From Anthoceros angustus (taxonomy: Eukaryota; Plantae; Anthocerotophyta): a stretch of DNA of 64,000 nucleotides. Every line of letters starts with the position of its first letter. The stretch's first letter is position 1. Where the stretch lies: the NCBI GenBank assembly GCA_010909165.1, contig MU008165.1, positions 434,001-498,000 of the forward strand, written 5' to 3'. Positions 7,290 to 62,727 of the stretch are shown here, one piece after another. A program made the position numbers and the translations under genes. Below the pieces are notes generated by a model that worked only from the letters and a program-made list of their open reading frames with translations, did not search any database and was not told the DNA's origin.

Positions 7290-8544
7290 GTGTCAAACTC
7301 GATTGGCCTCCTCCTAGTGACTACGATGTTGTGCCATCCGCCACCGTATGTTGTTTTCCATGTCCTTTCACCCTCTTCCTCCTCCTCTGTTGCGTCCCCA
7401 TCCTCGTTGTCTTTGCCTCCGCATTAACTTCACGGCTGTTTCCTCTTCTGTTCGAATCACCTTCGTGATCCCTTCTTCTTCATCCATTGTTTTCCCCTTC
7501 GCACCATCCACTGACGGGGCGTCGTCGCCGATACTGCTACCTTCCGAATCCAGATCAATTATTGCAGATTTTCGTGAATGCTTTGACCCATTTCTCTTCG
7601 TGGCGTCTCGCTTGGCCCTGATGCATACCCTCAGGGATTTCAAAAACTCGGGCACGGACTCCCCGCGCTCCCGCACATCCCATAGTTCCTTTTTGTTAGT
7701 GGGCGGAGTGATCCAAAATCACACTCCTCGTCAGTTGGCTCCCTCCCATACTTCTCTTGGAACTTAAAAACCCATCCAGCTCGTCCGCACTGGCCCCATG
7801 GATTGGGCCCTTCTCCATTTGATTTCTCGAGTCGAGTCTTAGCAAGTGATGCCTTGGATGGCAAAAATTTCCATCTTTGCTGAGTTCAACCCGTGCCCAT
7901 GTGAGAATCTCCGCCATACCCTTTCATCGCTAGTGGAGGCTGAAAATCTGTCAATTTTTGCCTACCCTCTTCTCCTCCAGGCCTTGAGCTTTGGGCGCCT
8001 CGACATACCTTGTTCCTTGTTCGAGTGTATTGGTGAACTACGGAAATCATCCCTTTGAGAAGATCCGGGCATACATGCACATTTTCTTCCTCCGAGACAA
8101 CGGCAAGTCGCTCCACTTTCCTGGAATTTCGTTTGCCGCTCTGCTGCGTATTACTTCCATGAACTTCTTATGCCTCGGGACAGTCAAGCCCCCGAAGGTC
8201 AATGTAGATGGAGGCTTTGGCTTCCCTGTGTGCTCCATATCTTTCGCAACTACACTGAGTGCCAGCAGTTGCTCTTGAATCCACTCTACTCCCCGTGTTT
8301 TCAGCAAAGCTCGGACCAGTTCGGTGTTGTCTATTCCACCCACAACTACTTCTAGCCCATCTTTGCAGAAACATTGTGGGGGAGGAAGCACACCGCCTCC
8401 TGCGACAAAGTTCCCTGCCCATACCTCGTGCAATGCAGCAGCCAAGCGAGCAACACGATGGCCACCGAGATTCCCTTCCGCTTCATAAGCTTCTTGGGAA
8501 TCCGGAACTTCATCAGGTGGAATGAAATCCTCCCCATATGCCAC
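7290..8544 (-). pseudogene. CACTA accessory ORF, probably TnpA-like, copy 2, frameshifted
   Basis: Duplicate of 5288-6587; longest open piece 8047-8544 (YGEDFIPPDEVPDSQEAYEAEGNLGG..GLTVPRHKKFMEVIRSR). The 3' end is approximate. Confidence 0.5.
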
Positions 8545-9850
8545 AGTTTTGCACTTACGGTGATGCGGCGGATCCCTGCATTTCCATTTCTCCCCAAACT
8601 CCGGCCGTCGAAATCAAAGCGCTACCATGCACGGCCATACGGCGGCGGATATGTCGATTCGAAAACAAGTAGGAGGGCATGTGGGCGCGCATGTACATGG
8701 TCATACTAGGCAATTGCATCGGCCAAGCGGTTGCTCACTTTCAATCGGGAATTCAAAGATAGCCTACAAAGGAGTGCACTATGCATCACACTATAGCTAC
8801 AACCATCCACCACAACGATATGAACATGTTATGGGTCAGTCATCGACCGCTGTCACCAACCATACATCACAGCAGGGACCATCGAATTACGCTGGCTAAT
8901 CCTGCAGTGTCCAAGCAAGGTCGTAAGTTTGGGACGCAAGCTCACGCCCTGGGGATGCACGTCCATAACCTCGCCACACTTCCACCGGATTGCAGGCAAG
9001 CAGGTATTTCAATCCTTCAAGCCCGATCGATTGCGAATACCGATGTTCGAGGCGAAGCGTATCGGAGAACTCGAAGCTATGGGCGGTAAGTGCACACCTC
9101 GGAAGGGTGTGGGTGCGAGCACGGGCCTTCTCCTCCCATCCCGCACAACAACGAGGTCGATTCTTCGTCTTCACGATCAACCACGCTTGCATGGAAAAAC
9201 CTATACATTTTCTTGCGGACGGTGGTTGTTCTATCGCAAAGTAGAAAACAACGAGTCTAACCGTGTCCGGGATAGCGACAACGGCATGCGCGCCTTCGAT
9301 TGGATGTTGTTGGCACGCTAGCGATGGGGAAGAAATGTCACGTGGTGTATGCTTCTTCACATCACGGTCACGAGCCATACCGGCAAAAGTCAATATCAGA
9401 TGCGCGGAATGCTATATTGAACCTACACACTCTCCCTTGCCACGGATTGCTGCTTAATTCAAATTGTGGGGCACTGCGCCGTCTTGCGGACGAATGACCA
9501 CTGTTCCCTCGATGTCGCCCGCACCATGTGAAATGACCAGCAGCAATGAAACGTGCTCCATGGTATGCCGCCTCGAAATGGCTGCCAATATCTGCCGGAT
9601 CTTATCTCTCCCTCTTCCGCCGTGTGGCGATCGTGTTCTTATGGCTGGATTTTATTGCAGACACCGGTATGCATGCAAACCGGTGGAGGTCGATCTCTTG
9701 CCACCTTGAGTGCTTGTTACACTGGCATGCACTTGCCACCTTGAGTGCTTGTTACACTGAAGTTGCGGCGTATCCGCCTCATTGAGCAGCCAAATCCTTT
9801 AACCTAAAAACCTTTATGGGCACTTATAGGTATTAGAAAATGCCATAATC

Positions 9851-24223: not shown

Positions 24224-27200
24224 TCAGACTTTTCTTGCTCTAGTCCTCTGTTTTGTTGCAAACTGCACAACCTTTTCCTCCACCGCCAGGCCTTTGCGTC
24301 GCCTCACACCGTCAATAAGCTTCCTAGCAGTATTGGGTGGGATGTTCGACCCATCGCCAAACTCCTCTAGTTCCTCCTCTGTTTTGGGAACAAAGAAAGG
24401 GTCTTGGAGTAGAGCTTCCCAGTGACTCAGAACTAATAAGGGGCTAGCAGCACCTGAAGTCTTCCTACGCAGCTCATCCGCAAATCCAAAGCTTTCAGCG
24501 ACAGGCATGTAAGCATGGACTAGAAACACAGCTGTCCCTTCTTGCATCTCCTCTTTCAGAACTCGAGCTCGCCTTCGACCCAGAACCGCGTACACCTGGC
24601 CCAGATGTTCAGGACTTGTACTGACCTCCACAAAGTACATGGCTTCAGCAATTCTGGGATTTCGTGCAAGCATAGCTGTTCGGCATGCATCCTTTACAGC
24701 AGTCATTACCTGTCCAGAAAAAGGCCCGTACTGATCGGCAACATTGCTTCCTCCAGCATCTGCTGCAGAGTCAGGACCCTCCCCATTTTCAGCATCACCC
24801 TTAGGTTTGGACACGAATGCTTCAACCGTGAAGACCATACCCCACATGGGCTCCTCGCACAGAGGGCCTTGAGCTGTTGCAAGCTGAAAACCAGCTGTCA
24901 CACTACCCTCCAATCCTGATTCAAGAGACCGAGAATCCCCGGCTAACCCCTCAGCAACTGTCGAAGTGTCGCTGTTTCCAACAAGGCCCAGTTTCCTAGA
25001 CACCTGCGGAGAGCCTCTCACATACTGCATGTCAAGTTCAGGTTCTTCTGAATTGCTTTGCTGGCTTACCTTCCTCCCAACTGGAGTGAGAAGAAGATTG
25101 GGTCCCATTCGTCTGGGACCCAAAGCCCATATTCTCTCGAGTCGTTGGAGCCAATATGGATTCTTGTTTTCCCCAGAGGAATCTTCACCAGATGCAGCAG
25201 CCAAAAGGTTAGCCTTCAAAGTTGCAACTGGATCCTCTTTAGCATCGTCTTGCATGTCACTCCAAAATTTATCCCTGTACCTAGAGATGGGACGACCCTC
25301 AATAATATCTTTCAGGAGTTCTTGATTATCATCTAGAACCTTCAAAACAGAGGCCGGCAACCTTTCAAGGTATACACGAACCGTACACCTCTTGTTTGGC
25401 GTAGTTGTCTCAACATATTCCAAACCCATCTGCCCACTTTGCTGAGAGTCCTCACTACCAGGCTCTATGGTTTCTCGAAATGCCACCAAGGGTGGTGACA
25501 CTTCCAGTTCAACCCTTGCAAAACGCTCTCTCAAATCCTTAATACACCTCTCTAGATGGACTTCTCCAGCTGTTGCAAGAACATGTTCACCATTCCCAGA
25601 TACAGATACTTCAACGAATGGGTCAGCCTTGTTGAGAAGCTTTAAGCCTCTTGCAAGAGCACCCATGTCTGCGGGATTCTTTGGCTCTAGAGCAACCCGG
25701 ACAATCGGAGCAGCCTGAAAGTCCATACTCTGAAAAGGCCAGCAATAAGGAGTGGTGGATAAAGTTGCAGTTTTCAGAATATGCTGCCCGAGGCCCCGCA
25801 ATGCAACCACATTTCCAGCAGATGCAGAAGGTTTTGGTTCCAGACCACTTCCCATCATCATGTAGAGAGCCTCAACTGTAGCTTCTTGCAGAGAATCGGT
25901 ATCCCACTTGGGGGCCGTGGGATCATGAATAGGCGACAGAATAAAAACCTTCTGACCAGCACGCAGAACCCCACTAAATACTCTAGCAAATGCAAGGAAA
26001 CACTCATGATGAGCAGCATCACTGTCACCTAGCCCGACTTCGTCTTCCAGATTGGCTAGAACCTCGCCTTCAGGACTGAAACGTGGCAACATCTCAGTAG
26101 GAACTGCAAACATCTTGGAGACGTAAACCACACAGGGTGCAGTACTGCTGTCATCACACGCTTCAACAGCCTTCCGCAGGCTCCCCAACTTCTCCTGGAC
26201 CTCAGTGCTGATTCCATCAGGGTACAAATGGATAGGCATCAAACGCACAGATCGGTAAGCCTGCGCTACGCCAGGACCTGGCAGCTTCTCTACCACCATA
26301 GACAAAACAGCGTCCACTATGGGAAGCCAGCGGCTCATGACTGCCTGAAGCACTACTTTAGAATCCTTGTGCACCAAATCACGAGGAGGGACTGTCAAGC
26401 TCATGGACTTGATAATCTTCTGCAGCATATCCGTACCTTTACTCCCCTGCATAACGACATCATAGACCTGCCAAAGTGGTTCAAGCACAAACTGGACAAA
26501 CATGGGTTTCAGTTTTCCAGCTGCTGCCTTCTTGCCCACAATCTTTTTCGTTTTGGGATTATAGTAGTAATCCCCCCACAAAGCTCTCTTCAAGGCCTTC
26601 ACGCTTGCACCCAGCTTCGTGGCGTACAGATCAGCAAATTGTTCGATCCGAAAAGCCCAACCATCACCTGCACTGCCAAAAGCCACATTTCCCTGCTCTG
26701 GAGCAAAAGCATCCTCCTCATCGGGCTCATCTTCCACTTCCTGACCCCCTCCCTCGTCCAAGGGGGACGTCGGTCCTGCCAGAATGGAGTCCACATCCGA
26801 TATATACTTCTCCGACCGGAAGGCATTAATAATGTTGTTGACCTCTCCAATAATGCTCTGCAAAAACAGCGTTGCACGATCATGAGCCTGGAAGAAAACT
26901 CCTCTGGGTAGCACAAGATCACACCTGCCATTACTCCACCTGCATTCTTAAAAACAATTTTGGGTCATCGCACTTTACCTGCATTCGTGCGTACGCCTCC
27001 GAAGGCGTCATCTTCACCTCCGTGATCAACCTATCAACCTTGTTGAGCACCAAACAAGGTGTTACTTTCTCAATCCATGCCTGCCGCAGCACGGCATGTG
27101 TCTGTATGTGCACCCCCTCACACACATCCACCAGCACCAACGCCCCGTCGCTAAGGCGGGCTGCTGTTGACACTTCACTACAAAAATCGACATGACCCGG

Positions 27201-27488: not shown

Positions 27489-28709
27489 CGCCACCGACGA
27501 AGGATGTGATCAGTCAGCTCAACGGTACAATGGCAGCTCTGGTGCGGTAGAATTTGAATCAAACAGTTCTGATTTCGGTCCTTATGCGTTGCAGCTTTGT
27601 GATCAACTAGAGCTATGTCCAAATCGCTTAGGCCAAATGCACATACATTTATAAGAAAAAGGTTGTTAAAGCATTTGCGCTTCTATCGATACTTAGATGG
27701 GGTGCCTAGAAGGAGTGGATGTCCTTAGTGCTAGTAGCTGAGGCACACTATGGTACAAGTTGTTACGTACCATGTCCATCATAGGAAAATTCTATCAAGT
27801 GGACTATAATAGACTTCTTCTTCTTCTAACAAATCCCAGAAGTGTTTAGATCTAGCTACATAAAACGAAGTCTACTTTTCTAGACTCTAAATAGTCCTTG
27901 AGTTTCGAAGAACCAATCCTACACCATAAAGCAGGAGTTAATAGGTAGCACGGGTAGAGTTTCGTACTTAGATAAACCAATTCAAAGGCACAAACTAGGT
28001 AGTTTTAGTTTATTCAACGAGCTATGAACCAAGCTCCAGAAGCCTTCACATATATAGGTAGGCAGACAAGTCAAATTCTATTTGTCATTTTTTTTAATGG
28101 GTAACATTCCTTGGGTTTTGAATTCATAATTTTTCTTTATTATGTATATATTTTATATTTTAAAATAATATCCTCTTTATTTATCCAATATTTCTTGAAT
28201 TTCAAAACTATCAGCCACAAATACATTGGCTTCTTGTCCTACCTTTGAAATATGTACACAACGTTTCTTCCTCATCTCAAAGCTGGGTCACTACACTGGT
28301 ACATGTAATCTAAACACTATGTGTAATTGGATATGGACAAAAAGCCACATGCTGCAAATGCCATGGAATGGCCACGAAAATATGGGCTTCTTGTCCTACC
28401 TTTACAATATGCGCACCATAATTCTGAATGCAATATATAATGTGCACACCATAATTTGAAGTGCAATGTGTAATTTTATAGGGATTAAGGAATCACATTC
28501 TACACACAATTTAGGTAGGAAACATGCTTCCATTGAGGATTGAATTTAGGGAATTCAAAACTCAATGGATCGAATTCAAAACCTTCAGTTTACAGGATTG
28601 ACACTTTACCACCGGGGTGCAAAGACCGATGACATACTAGTCCAATTCAGTCTGAAATTCTAAAAGATATTCGATTTGAGTAAATAGTGAGCCCATTAAT
28701 AGCATGCCA

Positions 28710-29411
28710 CATGACACGATTCGCCTTTTTTTTCACCTACATGGCATGTTGCTAAGTCCAATTCAGTTGTTGGTGCCCACCCTACGGGATTACCGCAATA
28801 GGCGGGACCACCAATTATTAGTGCCATCCTATTGTTACTGCATGCGTGGGGGCTACTATTGTTACTGCATGTGAGGGGGCTACAGTTGTTACCACACATG
28901 CGGGGCCGACCGTTATTTGTCCTATAGGGTTGCTCCATATCTGATAGTTATTTGTGTCAACAATAGTTTGTGTTTCCAAATTCTACATTTGGTTGTGCCT
29001 ACAGTTGTTTGTGTTTCCAAAATCTGACAATTGTTTGTGTTTCTAGACAATTGTTTGTGTTTCTAGATCTGACAGTTGTTTCTGCCGATAGTTGTTTGTG
29101 TTTCTAGATCTGATAGTTGTTCGTCTTTCCTGACAATTGTTTGTATTTCCAAATCCAGCACAAAAATTGTTTGTGTTTCCAGATCCGACACTTGTTTGTG
29201 GAGAGGTTCGTTTGTGTGTGTATGTGGAGACACATGGAGGTTGCTCCATATCAAAGTTCAAAAAGTTTTATTAACATCTCACGCTGAAGAATCACTCAAG
29301 GAAATACCGAAAGTCAAAATCCCAAGGCGGAACTTCGATATATACTTTAAAATATCTGTAAAGTCTTCCCATTCATTATAAAAAGATCCGATTCGGAGGC
29401 ATCTTTTGACC
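28710..29411. repeat. Non-coding block X, copy 1, with internal TTGTTTGTGTTTCYARA repeats
   Basis: Reappears near-identically at 31764-32439; internal ~20-nt degenerate repeats at 28960-29190. Confidence 0.9.
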
Positions 29412-29688
29412 CACGGTGACACTTGACACCGCCACTTCTAATAACATATGGTCCGTCTCGCCGGCGCATGCATTTCATGGTACCGGCAGCATGTGTGTTA
29501 ACCTGACTTTGAATAAGCACCAGTGGAACATGGAACCAGCGATCAAGACGGCGACGGCATGAGGAAAGCGTTTCCAATCACGACGCACTCGAAAAATTAT
29601 ATGGCCGCCTTAAGAAGACAAGCAACAGGAACAGGGTCAGCCAACGGAACATAATCAGGCCTTCCTGCTCATAGAGAACTAGCGACCC

Positions 29689-30006
29689 TTAGCTGAGCCC
29701 ACGACTTGCGTACCCAGATATCAGGGCCGTCCATGTGACTACATCCTTGTTGGCCAAGCTGTCAAAAACCCTGCGTGCCTCTTCCAGTTGGCCACATTTT
29801 GCATACATGTCCGCCAGGCAGTTGCCAACAAACAAGTCAGGAGGAATGTCACTGTGCAACACATCACAGTGCACTTTCCTGCCAGATTCCACGTCTGCAA
29901 CAAATGCACAAGCTTGAAGGGCTACTACAAAGACGTGAGCATTAGCGGAGATTATGGTGCACCACATGAAGGCATCCGCTTTACCCACCCTGGTGAACAC
30001 ATCCAT
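29689..30006 (-). pseudogene. Short PPR fragment (partial P, L, S and start of P) sharing its 5' region with DYW:KP copy C
   Basis: MDVFTRVGKADAFMWCTIISA/NAHVFVVALQAC..GNCLADMYAKCGQLEEARRVFDSLANKDVVTWTALISGY then stop; its upstream ~600 bp match 35050-35640. Confidence 0.8.
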
Positions 30007-30779
30007 GGCCTCCTGAAGCCTACCTCCTCATGCATATGTGTGCAATGGTTCCTCAGGTATGTATTAGACTCGTACCCAGAAAACCGTGGCAAGAAAACCA
30101 TGCGTCGAGCATTCCACTGCACCTTCAAAGGGCAATCGGATGTCAGACTTGAGAAGTACACTGATGAAGCAAAGCAAGGGTGAGGCGAAGACGTGCAGTG
30201 GCAAGGCAAGTGTGTGTGAAATGAATCGACTACCTTTCGAGCTGGTGGTCGGAGTGAGTGGCTGGTGGTGGAAGTACTACCATGCTTGATTTAGGATGCA
30301 ATACATTTCAGCCCACGCCGCAGGGCAAGCTGGATGGTAAATTTGCGGTTCAGATCAGAGTGTAACGACTAACCCTACTTTAGGTCTGTGGGAGACAAAC
30401 GGGAAAGTGGGTGGAGACTGACCTGAGTTTTTTCAGCCAGAAGTAGAAGAGCTTCCGTCCGTACTCATGCCCAGTGTTTGCAATGATGTGCTAGTTCACA
30501 ACCCTTGGCTGCATTACCATGGCAAAACAGATCGGCTGGATTCAGATGGCAAAGCCGCAAAGATCGAAGCCACAATTTACACATACAAAGCCAACCGCAC
30601 TTTTGACCTGAATCAAACAATGAAATTGGTTCTGGATCTCCCCCTACCTTCACTCCGGTTGCATCCAAGACCAGCACTTCGGGAAGACTCGTCATGAATG
30701 AGTGATCAGATCTTGTAACGTTTGGTAATCACACCATACCCACGGAGCCGGCAGGGCGAGGAAGTTTACACTGTACTCA

Positions 30780-31763
30780 TCAATGCTGATCACCACAAGA
30801 ACAGAACCCATCCACAAAATGGTGCACGCGGTGGGCATCTCTGACTATGATCTCTCGCTTCTCAACTCTGGACATAATCTTGGTTCCACTGTGGCAGACA
30901 TTGCACATCCGAAGATTCTTGGTGACTAGAAGAGTTTGACCATCTGGAGTATTCAGGAGACCATAAGCTAGTGCTAGCTTTTCAGCATGTCCACACAAAG
31001 CATCTTCATGCCTTGCATGATTAGGCCCAAGTTCCGACCTCAACTGTGTGTGTGTTTCATGGTTGCTTCCAGCCTCCGGCTGCATATTTACACTCCGTAG
31101 CTTGGACGCTACATCATCCCTTTCCTCCCCCACGCAGAAGGCATGAACTTTGCTGTTGAGCTCAATCCAGGCAGTTGCAGGCTTCTTACATGCACCCACG
31201 GACCTCCTCAAACTTTCTACCAATTCCACATCGCTCCACATACTAGCATTTGCATAGATGTTGGACAAAAGCACATACGCAGCAGAGTGCTGAGGCCTTA
31301 GTCGTACAAGCCTGTCAAAGCAACGCCTTCCTCGTTGAACGTCACCATGAGTCTTGCAGGAACTCAGCAAAGATGTCCAGCCCACAAGGTCACTTTCAAA
31401 TGGCATTTTCAGCAACATGTTCTCTGCTTCATCTAGATGTCCTGCCCGCCGAGAAGATCAACCATGCAATTATAGTGACACAAAGATGGAGTGATGCCAT
31501 GACTTTCCACCATCATCTGAAATACTTCTGACCTTCATCGACCAGACCCTGATGGCTGCATGCCACAAGCAGGCAAGTAAATGTAGCATCGCCAGGCGAG
31601 ACACCCTGCTGCTCCATCTCTTGGAAACACTGGATTGCCGTCTGGCCATCACAGTGTTGACCATAACCATTAAGCAAAGCTGTCCATGCCACAACATTCC
31701 TGGTTGGCAAACTGTCCAGCACTGTGCGAGCATCCTCCAAGCTGCCACATTTGCATACATGTC
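30780..31763 (-). pseudogene. PLS-E1-E2-DYW:KP PPR copy B (5'-truncated; E1-E2-DYW frame intact at 30780-31418)
   Basis: GACKKPATAWIELNSKVHAFCVGEE..EDALCGHAEKLALAYGLLNTPDGQTLLVTKNLRMCNVCH..RDAHRVHHFVDGFCSCGDQH*; interrupted at 31764 by block X. Confidence 0.9.
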
Positions 31764-32439
31764 CATGACACGATTCGCCTTTTTCACCTACATGGCATGT
31801 TGCTAAGTCCAATTCGGTTGTTGGTGCCCACCCTAGGATTACCGCAATAGGCGGGACCACCAATTATTAGTGCCATCCTATTATTCGCGTATGGGGGCTA
31901 CTATGATTCGCATGTGAGGGGCTACGATTGTTACCACATACGGTATTATTTGTCCTATAGGGTTGCTCCATATCTGATAGTTATTTGTGTCAACAATAGT
32001 TTGTGTTTCCAAATTCTACATTTGGTTGTGCCTACAGTTGTTTGTGTTTCCAAAATCTGACAATTGTTTGTGTTTCTAGACAATTGTTTGTGTTTCTAGA
32101 TCTGACAGTTGTTTCTGCCGATAGTTGTTTGTGTTTCTAGATCTGATAGTTGTTCGTCTTTCCTGACAATTGTTTGTATTTCCAAATCCAGCACAAAAAT
32201 TGTTTGTGTTTCCAGATCCGACACTTGTTTGTGGAGAGGTTCGTTTGTGTGTGTATGTGGAGACACATGAGGTTGCTCCATATCAAAGTTCAAAAGTTTT
32301 ATTAACATCTCACGCTGAAGAATCACTCAAGGAAATACCGAAAGTCAAAATCCCAAGGCGGAACTTCGATATATACTTTAAAATATCTGTAAAGTCTTCC
32401 CATTCATTATAAAAGATCCGATTCAGGCATCTTTTGACC
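31764..32439. repeat. Non-coding block X, copy 2
   Basis: Collinear with 28710-29411, with small indels. Confidence 0.9.
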
Positions 32440-32609
32440 TGAATCAAACAATGAAATTGGTTCTGGATCTCCCCTACCTTCACTCCGGTTGCATCCAAGA
32501 CCAGCACTTCAGGAAGACTCGTCATGAATGAGTGATCAGATCTTGTAACGTTTGGTAATCACACCATACCCACGGAGCCGGCAGGGCGAGGAAGTTTACA
32601 CTGTACTCA

Positions 32610-35060
32610 TCAATGCTGATCACCACAAGAACAGAACCCATCCACAAAATGGTGCACGCGGTGGGCATCTCTGACTATGATCTCTCGCTTCTCAACTCTG
32701 GACATAATCTTGGTTCCACTGTGGCAGACATTGCACATCCGAAGATTCTTGGTGACTAGAAGAGTTTGACCATCTGGAGTATTCAGGAGACCATAAGCTA
32801 GTGCTAGCTTTTCAGCATGTCCACAAAGCATCTTCATGCCTTGCATGATTAGGCCCAAGTTCCGACCTCAACTGTGTGTGTGTTTCATGGTTGCTTCCAG
32901 CCTCCGGCTGCATATTTACACTCCGTAGCTTGGACGCTACATCATCCCTTTCCTCCCCCACGCAGAAGGCATGAACTTTGCTGTTGAGCTCAATCCAGGC
33001 AGTTGCAGGCTTCACATGCACCCACGGACCTCCTCAAACTTTCTACCAATTCCACATCGCTCCACATACTAGCATTTGCATAGATGTTGGACAAAAGCAC
33101 ATACGCAGCAGAGTGCTGAGGCCTTAGTCGTACAAGCCTGTCAAAGCAACGCCTTCCTCGTTGAACGTCACCATGAGTCTTGCAGGAACTCAGCAAAGAT
33201 GTCCAGCCCACAAGGTCACTTTCAAATGGCATTTTCAGCAACATGTTCTCTGCTTCATCTAGATGTCCTGCCCGCCGAGAAGATCAACCATGCAATTATA
33301 GTGACACAAAGATGGAGTGATGCCATGACTTTCCACCATCATCTGAAATACTTCTGACCTTCATCGACCAGACCCTGATGGCTGCATGCCAAGCAGGCAA
33401 GTAAATGTAGCATCGCCAGGCGAGACACCCTGCTGCTCCATCTCTTGGAAACACTGGATTGCCGTCTGGCCATCACAGTGTTGACCATAACCGATTAAGC
33501 AAAGCTGTCCATGCCACAACATTCCTGGTTGGCAAACTGTCCAGCACTGTGCGAGCATCCTCCAAGCTGCCACATTTTGCATACATGTCCACAAGGCTGC
33601 TGCCAACAAGCACGTCAGCTAACAGTCCTGATTCCTGGATATCAAAATGAAGCCTCTTTCCCTGTTGTAAAGCTCCAAGCGCAGCACATGCTCTCAGAAG
33701 GCACACAAACATGGAGCTGTTCCTTGAAATTTTATTCGTCTGCATGCTTTCATGCAGATTCAGAGCTTCTTGATAAAGCCCATGCTGAACATAACCTGCA
33801 ATCATGGCATTCCAGGTCACGACATCTTTGTTGGGCAACCTGTCAAACACTTCACGAGCCTCTTCCAGGCTGCTGCATTTTCACGAACATGTCCACAAGA
33901 CTGCTGCCAACCACCACGTCTGCATCCAAGCATTGCTCCTGAATTGCCTATACAGCTGCTTCCCTTCCAGCAACGCTCTGTTGATGGCGCATGCCTTCAG
34001 GAGACACGCAAAAGTAAAAGGATTGGCTGGGTGATACCCTCTATTTGCATATTTCGATAAACAGCAAGGGCTTCTTGCAGAGCCCATGCTGGACATAGCC
34101 TGTGATCATGGCAGTCCATGCAACCACATCCTTGGTGCCCAGATCATCAAACACCTTGCGAGCATCCTCCAAGCTCCCACACTTGCATACATATCCACCA
34201 GGCTGCTGACAATCAAGTCAGCTTCCAGTCCACGCTCCTGGATCCGGGAATGAATTGCCTTACCTTCATGTAAAGCTCCAACACTGGCACATACTTTAAG
34301 GAGGCCTACAAATGTGACAATATCTGGGTGAGGCCTCTTCTTGCATTCGTTGGTACAGAGTGAGTGCTTCTTGACTAAGCCCATGCTGAATATATCCAGC
34401 AATCAAAGTGTTCCCCCGTCTCTCGTTGTGGCAATCGGTCAAACACTCTGCGAGCATCCTTTAAGCTCCACATTTGGCATACATGTCCACCAAGCAATTG
34501 CCAAGTATTATATCAGCTTCCAGCTGTCTTGCCTGAATCTGCGTCTCTAATTCCTTGCCTCTATCTACAGCTCCGGCACTGGCACATGCTTTCAATACAC
34601 ACACAAACGTGACTTGATTCGCTTCAGTCAGACCCTCATCTACCATAGATGAGTACAGAGTAAGGGCCTCTTGACCCTGACCATGCTGAGCATACCCTCC
34701 GATCATGGCAGTCCAGGATACCACATTCTTGACCGACATATTGTCGAATACACCTCGAGCATCCTGCAACCTCCCACACTTGACATACAAGTCCACCAGA
34801 CAGTTGCCAACCAAAACACTGGGCTCGGCCCCACTCCCTAACACATCAGAATGGACCTGTTTGCCAAGTTCTACGTCGGCGGCAGCTGTACAAGCTTTCA
34901 GCACCGCCATAAAAATATAGTCGTTTGGCTTCACAGCTGACCGCCTCATCGCACCATACAGTTTCAAAGCTTCTCCAGGCTTACCGTAGTCGGCATGTGC
35001 CGAAATAATAGAATACCACATGAAGGCATCCGCTTTACCCACCCTGGTGAACACATCCAT
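32610..35060 (-). pseudogene. PLS-E1-E2-DYW:KP PPR copy C (full length, multiple apparent frameshifts)
   Basis: All motifs from MDVFTRVGKADAFMW through six PLS triplets, E1, E2 and the DYW:KP end GDQH are present but spread over ~7 ORF pieces by 1-3 nt indels. Confidence 0.85.
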
Positions 35061-35812
35061 GGCCTCCTGAAGCCTACCTCCTCATGCATATGTGTGCAAT
35101 GGTTCCTCAGGTATGTATTAGACTCACCCAGAAAACCGTGGCAGAAAAATGAGCATTCCACTGCACCTTCAAAGGGCAATCGGATGTCAGACTTGAGAAG
35201 TACACTGATGAAGCAAAGCAAGGGTGAGGCGAAGACGTGCAGTGGCAAGGCAAGTGTGTGTGAAATGAATCGACTACCTTTCGAGCTGGTGGTCGGAGTG
35301 AGTGGCTGGTGGTGGAAGTACTACCATGCTTGATTTAGGCAATACATTTCAGCCCACGCCGCAGGGCAAGCTGGATGGTAAATTTGCGGTTCAGATCAGA
35401 GTGTAACGACTAACCCTACTTTAGGTCTGTGGGAGACAAACGGAAAAGTGGGTGGAGACTGACCTGAGTTTTTCAGCCAGAAGTAGAAGAGCTTCCGTCC
35501 GTACTCATGCCCAGTGTTTGCAATGATGTGCTAGTTCACAACCCTTGGCTGCATTACCATGGCAAACAGATCGGCTGGATTCAGATGGCAAAGCCGCAAA
35601 GATCGAAGCCACAATTTACACATACAAAGCCAACTTTTGACCTGAATCAAACAATGAAATTGGTTCTGGATCTCCCCTACCTTCACTCCGGTTGCATCCA
35701 AGACCAGCACTTCAGGAAGACTCGTCATGAATGAGTGATCAGATCTTGTAACGTTTGGTAATCACACCATACCCACGGAGCCGGCAGGGCGAGGAAGTTT
35801 ACACTGTACTCA

Positions 35813-37167
35813 TCAATGCTGATCACCACAAGAACAGAACCCATCCACAAAATGGTGCACGCGGTGGGCATCTCTGACTATGATCTCTCGCTTCTCAACT
35901 CTGGACATAATCTTGGTTCCACTGTGGCAGACATTGCACATCCGAAGATTCTTGGTGACTAGAAGAGTTTGACCATCTGGAGTATTCAGGAGACCATAAG
36001 CTAGTGCTAGCTTTCAGCATGTCCACAAAGCATCTTCATGCCTTGCATGATTAGGCCCAAGTTCCGACCTCAACTGTGTGTGTGTTTCATGGTTGCTTCC
36101 AGCCTCCGCTGCATATTTACACCTCCGTAGCTTGGACGCTACATCATCCCTTTCCTCCCACGCAGAAGGCATGAACTTTGCTGTTGAGCTCAATCCAGGC
36201 AGTTGCAGGCTTCTTACATGCACCCACGGACCTCCTCAAACTTTCTACCAATTCCACATCGCTCCACATACTAGCATTTGCATAGATGTTGGACAAAAGC
36301 ACATACGCAGCAGAGTGCTGAGGCCTTAGTCGTACAAGCCTGTCAAAAGCAACGCCTTCCTGCGTTGAACGTCACCATGAGTCTTGCAGGAACTCAGCAA
36401 AGATGTCCAGCCCACAAGGTCACTTTCAAATGGCATTTTCAGCAACATGTTCTCTGCTTCATCTAGATGTCCTGCCCGCCCGAGAAGATCAACCATGCAA
36501 TTATAGTGACACAAAGATGGAGTGATGCCATGACTTTCCACCATCATCTTGAAATACTTCTTGACCTTCATCGACCAGACCCTGATGGCTGCATGCCACA
36601 AGCAGGCAAGTAAATGTAGCATCGCCAGGCGAGACACCCTGCTGCTCCATCTCTTGGAAACACTGGATTGCCGTCTGGCCATCACAGTGTTGACCATAAC
36701 CATAAGCAAAGCTGTCCATGCCACAACATTCCTGGTTGGCAAACTGTCCAGCACTGTGCGAGCATCCTCCAAGCTGCCACATTTTGCATACATGTCCACC
36801 AAGCAATTCGTATTATATCAGCTTCCAGCTGTCTTGCCTGAATCTGCGTCTCTAATTCCTTGCCTCTATCTACAGCTCCGGCACTGGCACATGCTTTCAA
36901 TACACACACAAACGTGACTTGATTCGCTTCAGTCAGACCCTCATCTACCATAGATGAGTACAGAGTAAGGGCCTCTTGACCCTGACCATGCTGAGCATAC
37001 CCTCCGATCATGGCAGTCCAGGATACCACATTCTTGACCGACATATTGTCGAATACACCTCGAGCATCCTGCAACCTCCCACACTTGACATACAAGTCCA
37101 CCAGACAGTTGCCAACCAAAACACTGGGCTCGGCCCCACTCCCTAACACATCAGAATGGACCTGTTT
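35813..37167 (-). pseudogene. DYW:KP PPR copy D (three central PLS triplets deleted, 5'-truncated, frameshifted)
   Basis: DYW/E region matches copy B except for indels; the junction at ~36799 (GCATACATGTCCAC) joins the last S1 motif to the second S1 motif. Confidence 0.85.
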
Positions 37168-37179
37168 ATGTTCTCGCCG

Positions 37180-39516
37180 TTCAGCATGTCCACAAAGCAT
37201 CTTCATGCCTTGCATGATTAGGCCCAAGTTCCGACCTCAACTGTGTGTGTGTTTCATGGTTGCTTCCAGCCTCCGCTGCATATTTACACCTCCGTAGCTT
37301 GGACGCTACATCATCCCTTTCCTCCCACGCAGAAGGCATGAACTTTGCTGTTGAGCTCAATCCAGGCAGTTGCAGGCTTCTTACATGCACCCACGGACCT
37401 CCTCAAACTTTCTACCAATTCCACATCGCTCCACATACTAGCATTTGCATAGATGTTGGACAAAAGCACATACGCAGCAGAGTGCTGAGGCCTTAGTCGT
37501 ACAAGCCTGTCAAAAGCAACGCCTTCCTGCGTTGAACGTCACCATGAGTCTTGCAGGAACTCAGCAAAGATGTCCAGCCCACAAGGTCACTTTCAAATGG
37601 CATTTTCAGCAACATGTTCTCTGCTTCATCTAGATGTCCTGCCCGCCCGAGAAGATCAACCATGCAATTATAGTGACACAAAGATGGAGTGATGCCATGA
37701 CTTTCCACCATCATCTTGAAATACTTCTGACCTTCATCGACCAGACCCTGATGGCTGCATGCCACAAGCAGGCAAGTAAATGTAGCATCGTCAGGCGAGA
37801 CACCCTGCTGCTCCATCTCTTGGAAACACTGGATTGCCGTCTGGCCATCACAGTGTTGACCATAACCATTAAGCAAAGCTGTCCATGCCACAACATTCCT
37901 GGTTGGCAAACTGTCCAGCACTGTGCGAGCATCCTCCAAGCTGCCACATTTTGCATACATGTCCACAAGGCTGCTGCCAACAAGCACGTCAGCTAACAGT
38001 CCTGATTCCTGGATATCAAAATGAAGCCTCTTTCCCTGTTGTAAAGCTCCAAGCGCAGCACATGCTCTCAGAAGGCACACAAACATGGAGCTGTTCCTTG
38101 AAATTTTATTCGTCTGCTGCATGCTTTCATGCAGATTCAGAGCTTCTTGATAAAGCCCATGCTGAACATAACCTGCAATCATGGCATTCCAGGTCACGAC
38201 ATCTTTGTTGGGCAACCTGTCAAACACTTCACGAGCCTCTTCCAGGCTGCTGCATTTCACGAACATGTCCACAAGACTGCTGCCAACCACCACGTCTGCA
38301 TCCAAGCATTGCTCCTGAATTTGCCTATACAGCTGCTTCCCTTCCAGCAACGCTCTGTTGATGGCGCATGCCTTCAGGAGACACGCAAAAGTAAAAGGAT
38401 TGGCTGGAGTGATACCCTCTATTTGCATATTTCGATAAACAGCAAGGGCTTCTTGCAAGAGCCCATGCTGGACATAGCCTGTGATCATGGCAGTCCATGC
38501 AACCACATCCTTGGTGCCCAGATCATCAAACACCTTGCGAGCATCCTCCAAGCTCCCACACTTCGCATACATATCCACCAGGCTGCTGCTGACAATCAAG
38601 TCAGCTTCCAGTCCACGCTCCTGGATCCGGGAATGAATTGCCTTACCTTCATGTAAAGCTCCAACACTGGCACATACTTTAAGGAGGCCTACAAATGTGA
38701 CAATATCTGGAGTGAGGCCCTCTTCTTGCATTCGTTGGTACAGAGTGAGTGCTTCTTGACTAAGCCCATGCTGAATATATCCAGCAATCAAAGTGTTCCA
38801 CGTGACCACGTCTCTCGTTGGCAATCGGTCAAACACTCTGCGAGCATCCTTTAAGCTCCCACATTTGGCATACATGTCCACCAAGCAATTGCCAAGTATT
38901 ATATCAGCTTCCAGCTGTCTTGCCTGAATCTGCGTCTCTAATTCCTTGCCTCTATCTACAGCTCCGGCACTGGCACATGCTTTCAATACACACACAAACG
39001 TGACTTGATTCGCTTCAGTCAGACCCTCATCTACCATAGATGAGTACAGAGTAAGGGCCTCTTGACCCTGACCATGCTGAGCATACCCTCCGATCATGGC
39101 AGTCCAGGATACCACATTCTTGACCGACATATTGTCGAATACACCTCGAGCATCCTGCAACCTCCCACTTGACATACAAGTCCACCAGACAGTTGCAAAA
39201 CACTGGGCTCCTCTAATCAGAATGGACCTGTTTGCCAAGTTCTACGTCCTGAGCAGCACTGCCATAAAAATATAGTCGTTTGGCTTCACAGCTGACCGCC
39301 TCATCGCACCATACAGGTTTCAAGCTTCTCATCGGTGCCGTGCCGAAATAATAAATACCACATGAAGCTATCCGGGGCCGCCAGTTGGGCAAACACCTCT
39401 GATGCTTCCTGCAACCTTCCATGGGCATCGCTTCGAATAATGTCATCAATGTGTGTTAGACCTGCGTGCTTGACAGGGGGCAGACGCCTGCCAACAAGCA
39501 GATCTTTCCTGACCAT
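37180..39516 (-). pseudogene. DYW:KP PPR copy E (long open PPR tract 37493-39238, DYW cut after HAE, foreign 5' end)
   Basis: The 581-aa ORF covers GRLQDAR..to E1; the DYW begins only at the HAE codons (37180); beyond ~39365 the sequence switches to a different paralog (DAHGRLQEASEVFAQLAAPDSFMW). Confidence 0.85.
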
Positions 39517-40341
39517 GCTGAGCAGGGTGTGAAGATCGAACTGAACGCATGCACAACAGTGACCGCCAGCCCTGGCTCAGGAAACCATCTTTGAGTTGTA
39601 AGCAGATCGCTGTGGATCGCTGCTCCCTCTTGAAACAGCTTGCTCGGCGTTTTATCAGTAAAAGCACGGCCGCAGCCAGGCGTCTGCAGCATCCCAACAT
39701 GCAGGACGGGACGTCGGCGAGCAAACAGACCTTCGGGATCCGCCCCACCTGTCCCATACATGCTACATGCACCGAGAACCTGTATAGACTCTTTCTCTAA
39801 GTGGACTGAAGTGAAGAAAGGAGGAGATAGAGAAGTAACTCAGGGTCACCAGGGAGTTGCTGCTGGGTGCGGCCGCCGGCCCTTCTCAGCCCACTGGGAT
39901 GCTGCCGCTGGTCCTGGGAACGTGTTAACAGAATCGTTTCAACAGGCTTCTTTCAATGGTTCTTGACGTGACAAAGGCGACAGTTTCAAAGGCCGCTGAA
40001 GGAAGAAGCAAACATCAGCTAGGAACAAAGAAGGACAGGGCAAGAAGGATGAGGCGTTGCAAATGCTGGCGACAAGGCAGGCAGTGGCGCTCCCCCGGCA
40101 ACAGGATGGTTTGCCGCCTGAACTCCTTCCTGGCAGTGCTATGCCTCGCTGGGCTCAGGAGGGCTGCCTCCTGCTGCCAGGATGTTTTGGAGACAGGGCT
40201 TATTATCCTTCCTGGATGATGGGCAGAGCAGATTCAGGTGAGAAGTCAAGGATAGCCATTGTCTGGTCAGGTAGGATGGTGGACTCTGAGCTCTATTTGC
40301 TCATGGCGAGTCCGGGAGGGAGGAAGAGCATCTCTCTGCTC

Positions 40342-46794: not shown

Positions 46795-49700
46795 TTACCC
46801 ACGGATTTCTAACAACAATTGTGGGAGTCCCGTGTGCTCTCCCGCTTCTCGCTTGCCGAAAAGAAAAGTACTCAGCCTTTCTACATCACGCAAGTGGGAA
46901 AGTGATGAGTCCAAGAAAGACGCTTGTCTTTCTTCATACTGGAAAGAAGCTGCCTCAGCCTTCCGTGAAGGTTCACTCTTGAAGTGCTTCTTATGGCCGA
47001 CCAAGAAACTATGCACCAGTCCATCCATGCCAGTCCACCAGCTCTGACCCGGCTGCTTCCATGCCCTTGATCTGATTCTCCTGGTCTGCATCTCTTCTGC
47101 GTGCTCCCACATCTGGACATTGGTATAAATGTTGAACATCAAAACATATGCTGCGGAATCCTTCTTGTTTAGTTGCACTAACTGGTCGAAAGCATGGCGC
47201 CCGACCACTACGTTGCTCCACTTCCGACAGGCACCCAAAAGAGTGTGCCAAACTGCAGCATTAGGCAGTTCCGGCATTGTTCTCACCAAAGCTAGCGCCT
47301 CAACCAGTCGACCTGCACGACCCAGCAGATCCACCACGCAGGTGTAGTGCTCTGCTGTGGGTGTGATGCCGTACTCTCCGCGTCTCAGAGATTCAAAGTA
47401 CTCTCTCCCCTTGCTCACCAGACCTGCATGACTACATACTGTTAGCACACTAAGGAATGTGACGCCCACTGGCTGTATGCCATCCTCCATCATTCTTTGC
47501 ACTAAGTCAAAGACTATGTTACTGTCTCCTTGACAGGTATAGCCTGCAATTAATGCACTCCAGGCAACAACATCTCGTTCAGGCAACGCATCGAACACCA
47601 GTTGCGCATCAAGCATGCTCCCGGACTTGCCATACATGTTTATCAAACTGCTGCCTACAACCACGTCAGCTTGAAGCCCTTGCTCAACAATCTGCGCATG
47701 TAGCTGTCTTCCCAGATGCAATGCTGCTAAATTTGCACATGCCTGCAGGAGGCAAACGAATGTGACTGAATTGGGCACAGCAATGCCTCCTTCTTGCATA
47801 GCACTGTAAAGGCGAAGGGCTTCCTGACCCATTCCCTGCTGGGAATACCCAGCGATCAGGGCGTTCCATGTCACAACATCCTTTTGACACAGACCGTCAA
47901 AAACTCTGTGAGCGAGTTCTAAGCTGCCACACTTTGCATACATGGTCACCAAGCTGTTGGCTACAAACAGATCACCCTGGTGTCCTTGCTCTCTAATTTG
48001 CGCATGAAGCTGCTTCCCCTCCTCCAATGCTGGGGTCCCCACACTGGCACATGCCTGCAGCAGGCACAAAAATGTCACAGAATTGGGTATCGTGATGCCC
48101 TCCTGCTGCATAACACTGTAGAGATGAAGAGCTTCCTGGCCCATGCCCTGCTGGGAATACCCAGCTATCATGGCATTCCACGTCACCACATCTCTTTCAC
48201 CAAGTCCGTCAAACACTCTCTTGGCGTCTTCCAAGCTGCCACACTTTGCATACATGTTAACCAGACTGCAAGCTACAAAAACGTCAGCCTGCATATGCCC
48301 TCGTTCTCTAATTTGGGAGTGAAGTTGCTTTCCCATCTCCAAAGCAGCGGTGCCCACTCTTGCACATGCCTGCAGGAGGCCTACAAACGTTACGGAGTCG
48401 GGCACAGGCATGCCCTCTCCTTGCATAGCACTGTAGAGGTGAAGGGCCTCCTCCCCCATCCCCTGCTGGGAATACCGTGCTATCATGGCATTCCATGTTA
48501 CCAAATCTTTTTGACCAAGTCTGTCAAACACTTTTTGAGCGTCGTCCAAGCTCCCGCACTTCGCATACATGTTCACCAAGCTGTTGGCTACAAAGACATC
48601 AGCCTGATATCCTCCTTCTCTAATTTGTGTGTGAAGCTGCTTCCCCTTCTCCAATGCTTGGTCGCCCACACTTGCACATGCCTGCAGGAGGCACAGGAAT
48701 GTGACAGCATTAGGTACAACCATGCCTCCGTCTTGCATAGCACTGTACAGTCGAAGAGCTTCCTCGCCCATGCCCTGCTGGGAATACCCTCCTATCATGG
48801 CATTCCACGTGACTACATCCTTTTGACCTAGTTCGTCAAACACTCTTTCAGCATCCTCCATGCTGCCACACTTTGCATACATGTTCACCAAACTATTTGT
48901 CACGAAAACATCAGACTGATGTCCTCGTTGCTTAATCTCCTCATGAAGGCGCCTCCCCATCTCCAAAGCTGTGGTGCCCGTGCTGGCACATGCCTGCAGG
49001 AGGCACACAAATGTCACAGAATTGGGCACAGCCATTCCTTCCTCTTGCATACTACTGTAAAGACGGAGGGCTTCTTGACCCATGCCCTGCTGTGAATACC
49101 CTGCGATCAGAGTAGTCCACGTCACCACATCCTTCACAACCAGTCCATCAAACACTCTTCGAGCATCTTCCAAACTGCCAGACTTCGCATACATGTCCAC
49201 CAAGCCATTGTAGACAAACAAATCAGGCTCAACCCCACTGGCCAACACATCAGCATGCACCCTCTGCCCATTCATCAAGTCCGAACTCCTCGCACAAGCC
49301 TGAAGAGCTGCCACAAATACATGCCCATCTGGCCTCACACTTGACCCGCTCATTCTTCGGTACAGTTGAATGGCCTGCTTGTCTTCCCCATGTCTGACAT
49401 GAGCAGAAATTATGGCAGCCCACATGTAGGCATCAGGATTGGCAAGCAAGGTGAACACATCCATCGCTTCCTGCAACCTGCCATGAGAAGAGTACATTCG
49501 CAGGATATGGTTGCACAGGAACGTGTCTGATTGGTATCCCGTTTTCACCGTCAAGGCATGGACTCGGCGTCCCAGAACGAGATCCTTCTTCACCACACAC
49601 TTCTTCAGGACAGTCGTAACAAGAGATTTGGAAACACAACAGTCTGTCTGCACCATAACCCCCAAACCCTCAACTGCCTCTTTGACATAGCCCTGATAAC

Positions 49701-49809
49701 ATAGCTTGGTCACAGTGTCAGCCGTTACGATTCCTCCATGTCCTGCCTTTCTTCCTACAAAGCCTGTGGACCTCAAAACAGCCATAGGCGGCAGCTGAGC
49801 CGTGAGCAC
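46795..49809 (-). CDS. PLS-class PPR protein with E1-E2 and a truncated WW-type (PGxSWW) DYW start, 1004 aa, intronless
   Basis: N-terminal extension, about seven P-L-S triplets plus P2-L2-S2, E1 (AAVWHTLLGACRKW), E2, then PGQSWWTGMDGLVHSFLVG; no in-frame HxE or CxxC. Confidence 0.93.
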   Translation of the reverse strand: MLTAQLPPMAVLRSTGFVGRKAGHGGIVTADTVTKLCYQGYVKEAVEGLGVMVQTDCCVSKSLVTTVLKKCVVKKDLVLGRRVHALTVKTGYQSDTFLCNHILRMYSSHGRLQEAMDVFTLLANPDAYMWAAIISAHVRHGEDKQAIQLYRRMSGSSVRPDGHVFVAALQACARSSDLMNGQRVHADVLASGVEPDLFVYNGLVDMYAKSGSLEDARRVFDGLVVKDVVTWTTLIAGYSQQGMGQEALRLYSSMQEEGMAVPNSVTFVCLLQACASTGTTALEMGRRLHEEIKQRGHQSDVFVTNSLVNMYAKCGSMEDAERVFDELGQKDVVTWNAMIGGYSQQGMGEEALRLYSAMQDGGMVVPNAVTFLCLLQACASVGDQALEKGKQLHTQIREGGYQADVFVANSLVNMYAKCGSLDDAQKVFDRLGQKDLVTWNAMIARYSQQGMGEEALHLYSAMQGEGMPVPDSVTFVGLLQACARVGTAALEMGKQLHSQIRERGHMQADVFVACSLVNMYAKCGSLEDAKRVFDGLGERDVVTWNAMIAGYSQQGMGQEALHLYSVMQQEGITIPNSVTFLCLLQACASVGTPALEEGKQLHAQIREQGHQGDLFVANSLVTMYAKCGSLELAHRVFDGLCQKDVVTWNALIAGYSQQGMGQEALRLYSAMQEGGIAVPNSVTFVCLLQACANLAALHLGRQLHAQIVEQGLQADVVVGSSLINMYGKSGSMLDAQLVFDALPERDVVAWSALIAGYTCQGDSNIVFDLVQRMMEDGIQPVGVTFLSVLTVCSHAGLVSKGREYFESLRRGEYGITPTAEHYTCVVDLLGRAGRLVEALALVRTMPELPNAAVWHTLLGACRKWSNVVVGRHAFDQLVQLNKKDSAAYVLMFNIYTNVQMWEHAEEMQTRRIRSRAWKQPGQSWWTGMDGLVHSFLVGHKKHFKSEPSRKAEAASFQYEERQASFLDSSLSHLRDVERLSTFLFGKREAGEHTGLPQLLLEIRG

Positions 49810-60774: not shown

Positions 60775-62727
60775 ATGGCAGGGATGATCGTCGGGGCAAC
60801 CTATTCAAGCAATGGCACCTGGTTTGGCGGGAGGCACGAAGCTTCCTGGCAATGCACGTCCGAGCAAGGCTTTGGGATGCGGGTGTGCAAGCTGCAGACG
60901 GTGGCAAGGGGCTCACTGGGACAAGCTTGGCGGAGCACGAGCAGTAGCACGTTGCTGGCTGATGACTGGAGATTGAATTCAGGCGGTGGAGGAAATCCAT
61001 CGCTCAACAGCCTTTCTGCAGCTTCTCCAGCTCGAAGCAGGTCTCCTTTGTTTGACCAGTTTGTGGCGAAGGGAGGTTGATTTCCACTTTGTTGTGTTGC
61101 TGATCGCCTGGATGATGTTAAATGCAGGCCGGAACCGAAGTATGACAAATTCGACAGAGGTGACGTGGAGGGGGTGGTGCGTATGCTCTGTAAGGAGGGA
61201 AGGCTGGATGAGGCCGTGTCGTTACTGGAGAGCATGGATGAGCGAGGCATCAGTGTGAACCCTAGAGTTTTCTCGTCGATCTTGAAGCTGTGCATCAGGA
61301 TGAAGGCCTTGGAGAAGGGGAAAAGGGTTCATGGCTACATAATCAAGAGTGGGCTGGAATGTGAGATTGTTCTGTCAAACATGCTGGTCAACATGTATGC
61401 AAAATTTGGGAGCATTGGAACTGCACGAGCTGTTTTTGACAACATGCCGTCACGTGATGTTATATCGTGGACGGCGCTGATATCTGGGTGCGTTGCTCAT
61501 GGGTATATAAAAGATGCTTTCAAACTGTTCAAGGAGATGCAGGATGCAGGAGTCAAGCCTAGTAGGGTCACTTTTATCAGCATGCTTCATGCCTGTGGCA
61601 GCCTTGGTGTTTTGGAGGAGGGCAAGCGAATGCATGCCCTTGTAATGGAAAGCCATTTAGAGCTAGCCGACTATGTGGCCAATTCCCTCGTCACAATGTA
61701 TGCAAAGTGTGGAAGCATGAAGGAAGCTCAGAAAGTGTTCAACCGGATGCCTCAGCGGGACTTGGTTTCATGGAACGCGATGATCGCGGGGTATGCAAAG
61801 AACGGACGTGGTTGGCAGGCTCTGAATCTCTTCAAGCGGATGCAAAGAGAGGGCGAGAGTCCAGATGCTTACACATTTGTCAGTGCCCTCAGTGCATGTG
61901 CCAGCTTGGGAGCCTTGCAGGAAGGCAAGGAAATACATGCTGCAAGCTGTAAGGCCGGATGGCACATCAAACCCGAGGTGGGGAACAGCCTGATCGATAT
62001 GTATGCTAAGTGCGGTAGCATTGCTGATGCTCGGCAAGTCTTCAATACTATGCGGAAGCATGACGTGGTGACATGGAATTCCATGATCAAGGGATATGCA
62101 CTCCATGGACTTCACCAGGAGGCCTTTGCCATTTTCCAGCAAATGGCAGACGAGAATGTAAAACCAGATGGTCTCACCTTTGTCAGCATCCTGAACGCCT
62201 GCTCTGCTGCGACCACTGTCAAAGAGGGCAGGGTTGTGCATTCCTACTTGTACAAAACAGGGTTCGAGGCCGACGCCTTCGTCTGGAATGCCCTCATCGA
62301 CATGTATGCAAAATGTGGGAGCATGGAGGAGGCGCGTGACGTGTTTGAGAAGATGGGCAGGCGAGATGTTGTGTCCTGGAACACTCTGATGGCAGGTTAT
62401 GCTCAAAATGGCCAACCTAGAACTTCACTAACACTATTTCACAGAATGCTAAAAGAAGGGGTGCTACCGAGTGCCATCACCTTCACCTGCGTTCTTCACG
62501 CCTGTGCCAGCCTCTCAACCCTGGAGGAGGGAAAGGAGATTCACGATCTGCTAATAAAATCTGGCTTTGACAACGATATGACTGTCAGAAATGCTCTTGT
62601 GCACATGTATGTGAGGTGCGGGTCCCTCGACAATGCTGGCAGTGTGCTACACAACGGCCGTGAGTTCCCACCGAGCTGCCTAGACGCCAAGTTTTGGGTG
62701 AAGAAGGGTTACCATGTCCCCAGCTAG
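60775..62727 (+). CDS. PLS-class PPR protein lacking E/DYW; exons 60775-61040 and 61128-62727 (3' end may splice at 62660)
   Basis: The intron 61041-61127 (GT..AG) joins a transit-peptide-like exon in frame to RPEPKYDKF..VVRMLCKEGRLDEA; four P-L-S triplets follow and the protein ends after an S motif with no P2L2S2/E1. Confidence 0.88.

Follow-up and report, generated by a model that had tools for sequence, protein, structure and literature searches.

The locus described here raises the question of whether a dense run of broken pentatricopeptide repeat (PPR) sequence encodes an RNA editing enzyme and, if so, how its damaged state in the assembly should be read. It lies on the minus strand at 29.6-39.8 kb of a 64,000-nucleotide (nt) stretch of the hornwort Anthoceros angustus (GenBank assembly GCA_010909165.1, contig MU008165.1, positions 434,001 to 498,000), referred to below as the window, and consists of repeated pieces of one PPR gene, labeled copies A to E. 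The stretch analyzed is N-free plant nuclear DNA of ~49% GC. The best overall explanation is that these pieces are probably near-identical copies of one nuclear PLS-class PPR gene that ends in a DYW:KP deaminase of the DRH subgroup. Hornworts have many DYW:KP genes, the accepted candidates for reverse (U-to-C) editing in organelles, a reaction that occurs in hornworts, lycophytes, and ferns. A first-pass annotation made from the sequence had described the locus as an array of genes for a recently multiplied U-to-C editor, a description that survives in part.

The deaminase domain is best represented by copy B, which contains an open reading frame (ORF) of 212 amino acids (aa) at 30780-31418 on the minus strand, with Pfam matches to E_motif and DYW_deaminase (PF14432, E 2.7e-30). 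DYW:KP genes form a described hornwort family. Their domains carry a KP pair in place of PG and Ala or Cys in place of Ser in the HxE motif, have lost xHP, span 132-133 aa as against 136, carry Met92 for Val95, end in a variable C-terminal triplet, and conserve Lys88 (PMC9478123; PMC11845758). The copy B domain has the HxE(x)nCxxC signature of a deaminase by Pfam, alignment, and fold match (9kfx/7o4e). Its box reads KKPATAWIE, whereas PG proteins carry xxPGxSWIE, and its HxE motif is HAE. It contains no xHP (VGEERDDVASK), and the distance from box to His is 64 residues, compared with 66 in 69 of 78 PG domains. The motif KNLRMC is also present, with K167 equivalent to Lys88 and M171 to Met92, a position occupied by V or I in 70 of the 78 PG domains. 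None of the four features that define DYW:PG domains (PG box, HSE, xHP, and a terminal D-Y/F-W) is found. When exact coordinates are translated, KKPATAWIE, HAE, CNVCH, and DQH each stand in copy B where the first-pass annotation had placed them. The triplet DQH, which ends copies B, C, and D, departs from a strict DRH; close relatives end in DRH, DNH, or DHH, and DQH is a DxH variant that groups with them in the tree described below.

Profile scores and phylogeny agree with the motifs. When 1.84 billion representative proteins were searched exhaustively with HMMER, HAE/KP-box proteins came out on top at 298-258 bits, whereas canonical HSE/PG/DYW proteins reached at most 200 bits. Class profiles were built from 157 full-length DYW domains among the search hits, grouped by literature criteria with the query left out. 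These KP, PG, and WW-like profiles were made here and are distinct from the published hidden Markov models, and the WW-like set is small. Against them, the copy B domain scored 191.5 bits with HAE-type KP, 157.5 with HCE-type KP, 133.0 with PG, and 126.3 with WW-like. Size-matched profiles of three members each gave 143-199, 131-153, and 118-129 bits for HAE-KP, HCE-KP, and PG, respectively, and 155 bits were still reached with a profile limited to the fern-side KP subclade. In a maximum-likelihood (ML) tree, the query falls inside a clade (100/94*) of 12 HAE sequences and one HVE sequence, which includes Pteridium and Ceratopteris proteins among its fern members, while PG domains form a separate clade (100/98*). 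As judged by motifs, profile scores, and phylogeny, the copy B domain is a DYW:KP domain, so the class proposed by the first-pass annotation stands. The DRH subgroup is indicated because the best score is with HAE-KP, the tree places the domain in the KP clade, and the nearest named relatives are transcripts of the hornwort Nothoceros aenigmaticus. By these comparisons, the domain is a DxH variant of the hornwort DRH subgroup and an ordinary member of a known family. DYW:PG, WW type, and HCE-type KP were each considered as the best class and rejected on the profile scores and the ML tree.

The Nothoceros transcripts share 61-70% identity with the query over E2-DYW and end in GDRH (P0272) and GDNH (P0277), while an unnamed Logan protein ends in GDHH (P0122). 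The query and the hornwort DRH-subgroup proteins have in common the KKPAxAxIE box, the loss of xHP, LCGHAEKLALAYGLLNTP, KNLRMC, a CSCGDxH ending, and a place in the same starred subclade of the ML tree. They differ in that the query has DQH for DRH and CNVCH for CxDCH, and its beta-finger reads THTQLRSELGPNHARHEDAL, one residue longer than the (H)TELVLKxxSxxxKEDAL of the subgroup. Other KP-clade proteins likewise vary at the Asp position of CxDCH, with H, E, Q, or V where the query has Val, and the length of the beta-finger differs among them too; these variants are therefore not in themselves signs of decay. Unlike its hornwort DRH-subgroup relatives, the locus as assembled has no intact full-length copy.

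Residue roles were assigned by aligning the copy B domain to the solved DYW domain of OTP86 (7o4e), following PMC7611903. All Zn1 ligands (H144, C172, C175), the catalytic E146, the active-site lysine K167, and all Zn2 ligands (H176, H199, C206, C208) are retained, in agreement with the earlier statement that the zinc ligands and catalytic Glu are intact. In a 66-sequence alignment, the zinc ligands, E146, and K167 are invariant or nearly so, with H144, E146, C172, and C175 invariant. The shortened gating region reported in the first-pass annotation holds modestly, since the gating domain (H92-G143) measures 52 aa and that of OTP86 55; the domain lacks four residues at the xHP site, a loss for which an insertion farther along partly compensates. 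The AlphaFold2 model derived from the 66-sequence alignment has a mean predicted local distance difference test score (pLDDT) of 89.9, and its best Foldseek matches are the synthetic PPR-DYW protein 9kfx (TMq 0.82), OTP86 (7o4e/7o4f), and DYW1 (7w86). These DYW:PG domains share the fold, the Zn1 and Zn2 ligands, the catalytic Glu, and the active-site Lys with the query, which differs from them in having KP for PG, HAE for HSE, M for V just ahead of the first Cys, three fewer residues in the gating domain, and His at the position of the terminal Trp of OTP86. The query scores 58 bits lower with the PG profile than with the KP profile. Copies C and D carry the same DYW DNA as copy B apart from 1-2-nt indels.

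The whole gene is represented by a composite coding sequence (CDS) pieced together from codons 1-95 of copy C and the open frames of copies E and B, with the joins placed at residues that the copies share. It comprises 824 uninterrupted codons arranged as (P1-L1-S1)x5-P2-L2-S2-E1-E2-DYW. This PLS-E1-E2-DYW architecture is complete in the composite, structurally complete in copy C, and open throughout in no single copy. The open PPR tract noted earlier in copy E is confirmed as an ORF of 581 aa (37493-39238, minus strand) with PPR repeats throughout. The proposal that copies E and B rebuild a gene of ~830 aa is borne out by the length of the composite, with the amendment that the first ~95 codons must come from copy C because copy E is garbled there. 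The gene continues 5′ of the composite: copy E matches the intact paralog (46795-49809) over paralog residues 50-257, and copies A and C carry PPR-like coding sequence for at least 60 further codons upstream. The N-terminal region of that minus-strand paralog is the closest paralog of the 5′ end of the multicopy gene. No OSB-type PDF N-terminal domain was seen by eye in the N-terminus of the paralog or in the upstream frames of copies A, C, and E, no formal search having been made.

The locus is a mosaic and not the array of genes first described, because only copy C spans the composite CDS (Table 1), the others are fragments or deletion derivatives, and none has a full-length frame that is open as assembled. 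The earlier observation of several near-identical copies is correct. Copy A has in common with copy C only the 5′ flank and 46 nt at the start of the composite CDS (29961-30006). Copy B has three 1-nt deletions upstream of its 212-aa ORF and is cut at 31765 within the VDMYA-coding motif GCATACATGTCCA, the same motif at which copy D recombined. Copy C contains 16 small indel events, 14 of them frame-shifting, and its PPR-like coding sequence runs on upstream to about 35250 with one further frameshift. Copy D has about 11 frame-shifting indels and a 916-nt internal deletion that removes three PLS triplets across a 14-nt identity within the PPR repeats; this identity sits in a ~70-nt homeologous PPR stretch (36735-36803). 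Copy E carries the 5′ region of the gene itself, garbled at 39170-39550, and breaks off at 37180, immediately past the HAE codons, which leaves it without the CxxC and the entire C-terminal half of the deaminase.

The junctions between these pieces differ in kind. Copy B meets filler F2 (31755-31765) with 3-4 nt of microhomology, F2 meets copy C (32427-32439) with the 9-nt microhomology CTTTTGACC, and copies D and E are joined by the 12-nt filler ATGTTCTCGCCG (37168-37179), which matches neither flank. F2 is a 94.5% copy of the 0.7-kb filler F1 (28699-29411), and the fillers flank copies A and C. Their tandem repeat unit is like ACAATTGTTTGTGTTTCCAAAT..., possibly a transposon fragment. A segmental duplication (29961-31765 versus 35015-36798) pairs copy B with copy D. 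The larger truncations and junctions are likely genuine, the outcome of unequal recombination among PPR repeats together with microhomology-mediated joining.

The small frame breaks have a different character. Across the BLAST copy pairs, gap openings number 47, 23, 7, 14, 3, and 10 against 5, 2, 1, 2, 1, and 1 mismatches, respectively; a four-way alignment of copies B, C, D, and E has 14 indel sites and one substitution. Departures of the copies from the composite amount to about 50 indel events but just 1-2 substitutions that stand isolated; the remaining "substitutions" adjoin deletions in garbled stretches. An indel-only pattern of this kind is expected for a noisy long-read consensus in repeats where short reads cannot be placed, and the A. 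angustus genome comes from a wtdbg assembly of Nanopore reads that was then polished using Pilon (PMC7027989). The ~1.8-kb tandem duplicate elsewhere in the window (4913-6736 versus 6881-8697), 92% identical with 60 gap openings and 42 mismatches, points to unpolished long-read consensus in the assembly's repeats. Unique frames nearby (the 896-aa EFL1-like exon and the 1004-aa PPR gene) are unbroken. Given the ratio of about 50 indels to 1-2 isolated substitutions, together with the intact state of unique genes nearby, long-read consensus errors left uncorrected probably explain most of the 1-2-nt frame breaks, and one or more intact genes of ~830-930 aa are probably present in the real locus. 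An argument from homopolymers was dropped in favor of the indel-to-substitution ratio because 10 of 19 of the 1-2-nt indels touch a same-base run, no clear excess over chance. The claim that the gene was recently multiplied is not supported: the copies differ almost only by small indels, and such a history is indistinguishable from assembly effects.

Several findings count against an intact editor gene hidden by consensus error, some concerning the locus and others the enzyme. In addition to the homopolymer result, these include the absence of an open full-length frame in any copy as assembled, and the lesions of copy E, which are deletions of 5-16 nt with garbled flanks (39170-39354) and exceed typical homopolymer errors. 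Seven indels set the neighbors B and C apart from D and E, even though B is structurally paired with D, and shared indels are not expected from independent random errors. In a collection of 15 billion proteins, no identical or near-identical protein was found, so nothing independent points to a gene that is intact or expressed. In protein searches, no hit exceeded 70% identity to the DYW ORF or 53% to the PPR tract, and public protein collections hold no exact matches to the 212-, 581-, and 199-aa ORFs. Together with the structural truncation or internal deletion of four of the five copies, small indels aside, these observations would suit a real pseudogene cluster, in which all copies are dead as written and represent birth-and-death leftovers of the very large hornwort PLS-PPR family with no functional editor. 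This reading is nonetheless unlikely: the excess of indels over substitutions reverses the pattern of natural decay, in which the old internal PPR repeats of the intact paralog in the same window differ by 256 mismatches and 21 gaps, and the copy B DYW domain keeps every catalytic and zinc residue. Indel sharing (B with C, D with E) also tracks physical neighborhood rather than the B-D structural pairing. It appears to fit local consensus behavior better than descent. Local consensus or polishing behavior, or gene conversion, could produce the sharing between B and C.

Another rival reading, in which the array itself was made by the assembler from noisy long reads mis-joined over a PPR-repeat-rich locus with one or two true copies, is quite improbable. 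It would account for copies that are identical apart from indel noise, for two breakpoints in the same highly repeated VDMYA-coding motif, and for a junction filler unrelated to its flanks. However, the junctions are specific and differ in kind (9-nt microhomology, 14-nt identity, 12-nt filler) like those of real rearrangements, the repeat unit takes in non-genic filler and spacer duplicated in consistent order, and 9.8% of A. angustus genes lie in tandem clusters (PMC7027989). Were both the junctions and the indel-only divergence real, active template switching or slippage would be multiplying, scrambling, and inactivating editing-factor genes in this hornwort genome, and the birth and death of PLS-PPR genes would be driven by repeat-targeted, indel-prone repair and not by ordinary point mutation; this is highly improbable. 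Real rearrangement overlaid by consensus error remains the preferred reading of the locus. It carries a caution for this assembly, whose recent repeats hold dense indel noise: "pseudogene" and "frameshift" calls in tandem families are unsafe at face value.

The function of the encoded enzyme is a separate matter. If the protein is made, it would be imported into an organelle, where its PPR motifs (at least 18) would bind a footprint RNA. P and S motifs read RNA by the established PPR code, which gives the predicted footprint 5'-nnYAnUUnGAnGYnAGnU, with the edited base expected four nucleotides 3′ of the S2-bound nucleotide. That base would be placed in the DYW:KP pocket, where zinc bound by H144, C172, and C175, together with E146 and K167, would convert U to C through a lysine-linked intermediate. 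To our knowledge, no natural KP protein has ever been assayed. Designer proteins of the class include KP1 (DRH-based), KP2 and KP3 (GRP-based, of hornwort type), and KP6 (fern), which have the KP box, HAE, Lys88, and M92 in common with the query (Ichinose et al. 2022, PMC9478123); designer KP domains are ~133 aa long (PMC9478123, PMC11845758) and the query domain is 134 aa. Among these proteins, only KP2, KP3, and KP6 edited U to C (PMC9478123), and they require HAE, CxxC, and Lys88 to do so (PMC9478123, PMC11845758). A lysine-linked intermediate is described for all three, and six positions in KP6 are reported to tune the direction of the reaction, giving the KP6c and KP6u variants (PMC11845758).

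Whether the encoded enzyme converts U to C is evenly balanced. The alternative is that it edits C to U or is a catalytically silent RNA binder despite its KP class, which is somewhat doubtful. KP1, the DRH-consensus designer and the nearest in type to the query, gave 0% editing in either direction in E. coli and human cells (PMC9478123, Supplementary Data 3), and KP6 edits in both directions. Val stands in for the Asp of CxDCH, and the gating beta-finger diverges, reading LRSE instead of LVLK; this finger (residues about 111-140) is the low-confidence part of the AlphaFold2 model, with a pLDDT of 61-65. At the KP6 tuning positions, the copy B domain has W6, while G64, V113, and H133 agree with the C-to-U-enhancing substitutions of KP6c, and A116 and V119 agree with the U-to-C-favoring substitutions of KP6u. 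Against a loss of U-to-C activity are the presence of Lys88, HAE, and M92, changes of HAE to HSE lowering U-to-C editing in active KP proteins, and the variability noted above at the CxDCH Asp position in other KP-clade proteins. KP proteins also match U-to-C sites by the PPR code (PMC9478123). The editing direction cannot be read from the sequence of the copy B domain, and the U-to-C assignment derives solely from class membership. The first-pass annotation was therefore sound in placing the gene in the KP class and overstated in calling it a U-to-C editor, given that membership in the class is the only ground and that the DRH-based KP1 is inactive.

The locus adds one DRH-like DYW:KP member with small variants (DQH, CNVCH, and a divergent beta-finger) and has little meaning beyond annotation. 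A natural DRH-type protein of verified sequence, paired with its cognate site, would make a useful test, but the true sequence of the locus is needed first.

Table 1. Features of the PPR locus and its surroundings, in window coordinates.
Feature	Position	Strand	Remarks
EFL1-like (ribosome assembly GTPase) exon	24224-26914	-	896 aa open
Copy A, PPR remnant	29644-30063	-	rest resembles a different paralog
Copy B, 3′ fragment	30780-31765	-	codons 496-824: last S1, P2-L2-S2, E1, E2, DYW:KP, stop
DYW:KP deaminase domain, copy B	30783-31184	-	134 aa, from KP to DQH
DQH	30783-30791	-	with stop, 30780-30791
Zn2 ligands, copy B	H 30822-30824, C 30801-30803, C 30795-30797	-	
CNVCH	30891-30905	-	translation of exact coordinates
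Lys88 equivalent (K167)	30918-30920	-	
HAE	30981-30989	-	translation of exact coordinates
KP box KKPATAWIE	31161-31187	-	translation of exact coordinates
E2, copy B	31185-31286	-	
E1, copy B	31287-31388	-	
Filler F2	31755-32439	.	separates copies B and C; 20-87-nt tandem repeats
Copy C	32610-35060	-	only copy with all 824 composite codons
Spacer, copy D stop codon to 5′ part of copy C	35061-35812	.	duplicated at 30007-30779 between B and A
Copy D	35813-37167	-	codons 495-824 (35813-36803) and 67-212 (36735-37167)
Copy E	37180-39550	-	codons 10-759 map to 37180-39374
Intact PLS-PPR gene	46795-49809	-	1004 aa; E1/E2; truncated WW-type box KQPGQSWW; E+ type
Third PPR gene, PLS type	61165-62727	+	520-aa open frame; ends without E/DYW motifs in frame

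The neighboring 1004-aa paralog is homologous to the multicopy gene in its N-terminal region and PPR tract. Unlike that gene, it is of E+ type with a PG/WW box, has no deaminase domain, and has an unbroken frame.

The EFL1-like exon shares 61-62% identity with lycophyte, liverwort, moss, and fern proteins alike and has one unnamed match at 73%. These identities are consistent with a lineage that lacks annotated proteomes in the database. The equidistance of this exon and the hornwort relatives of the DYW domain fit a hornwort source.

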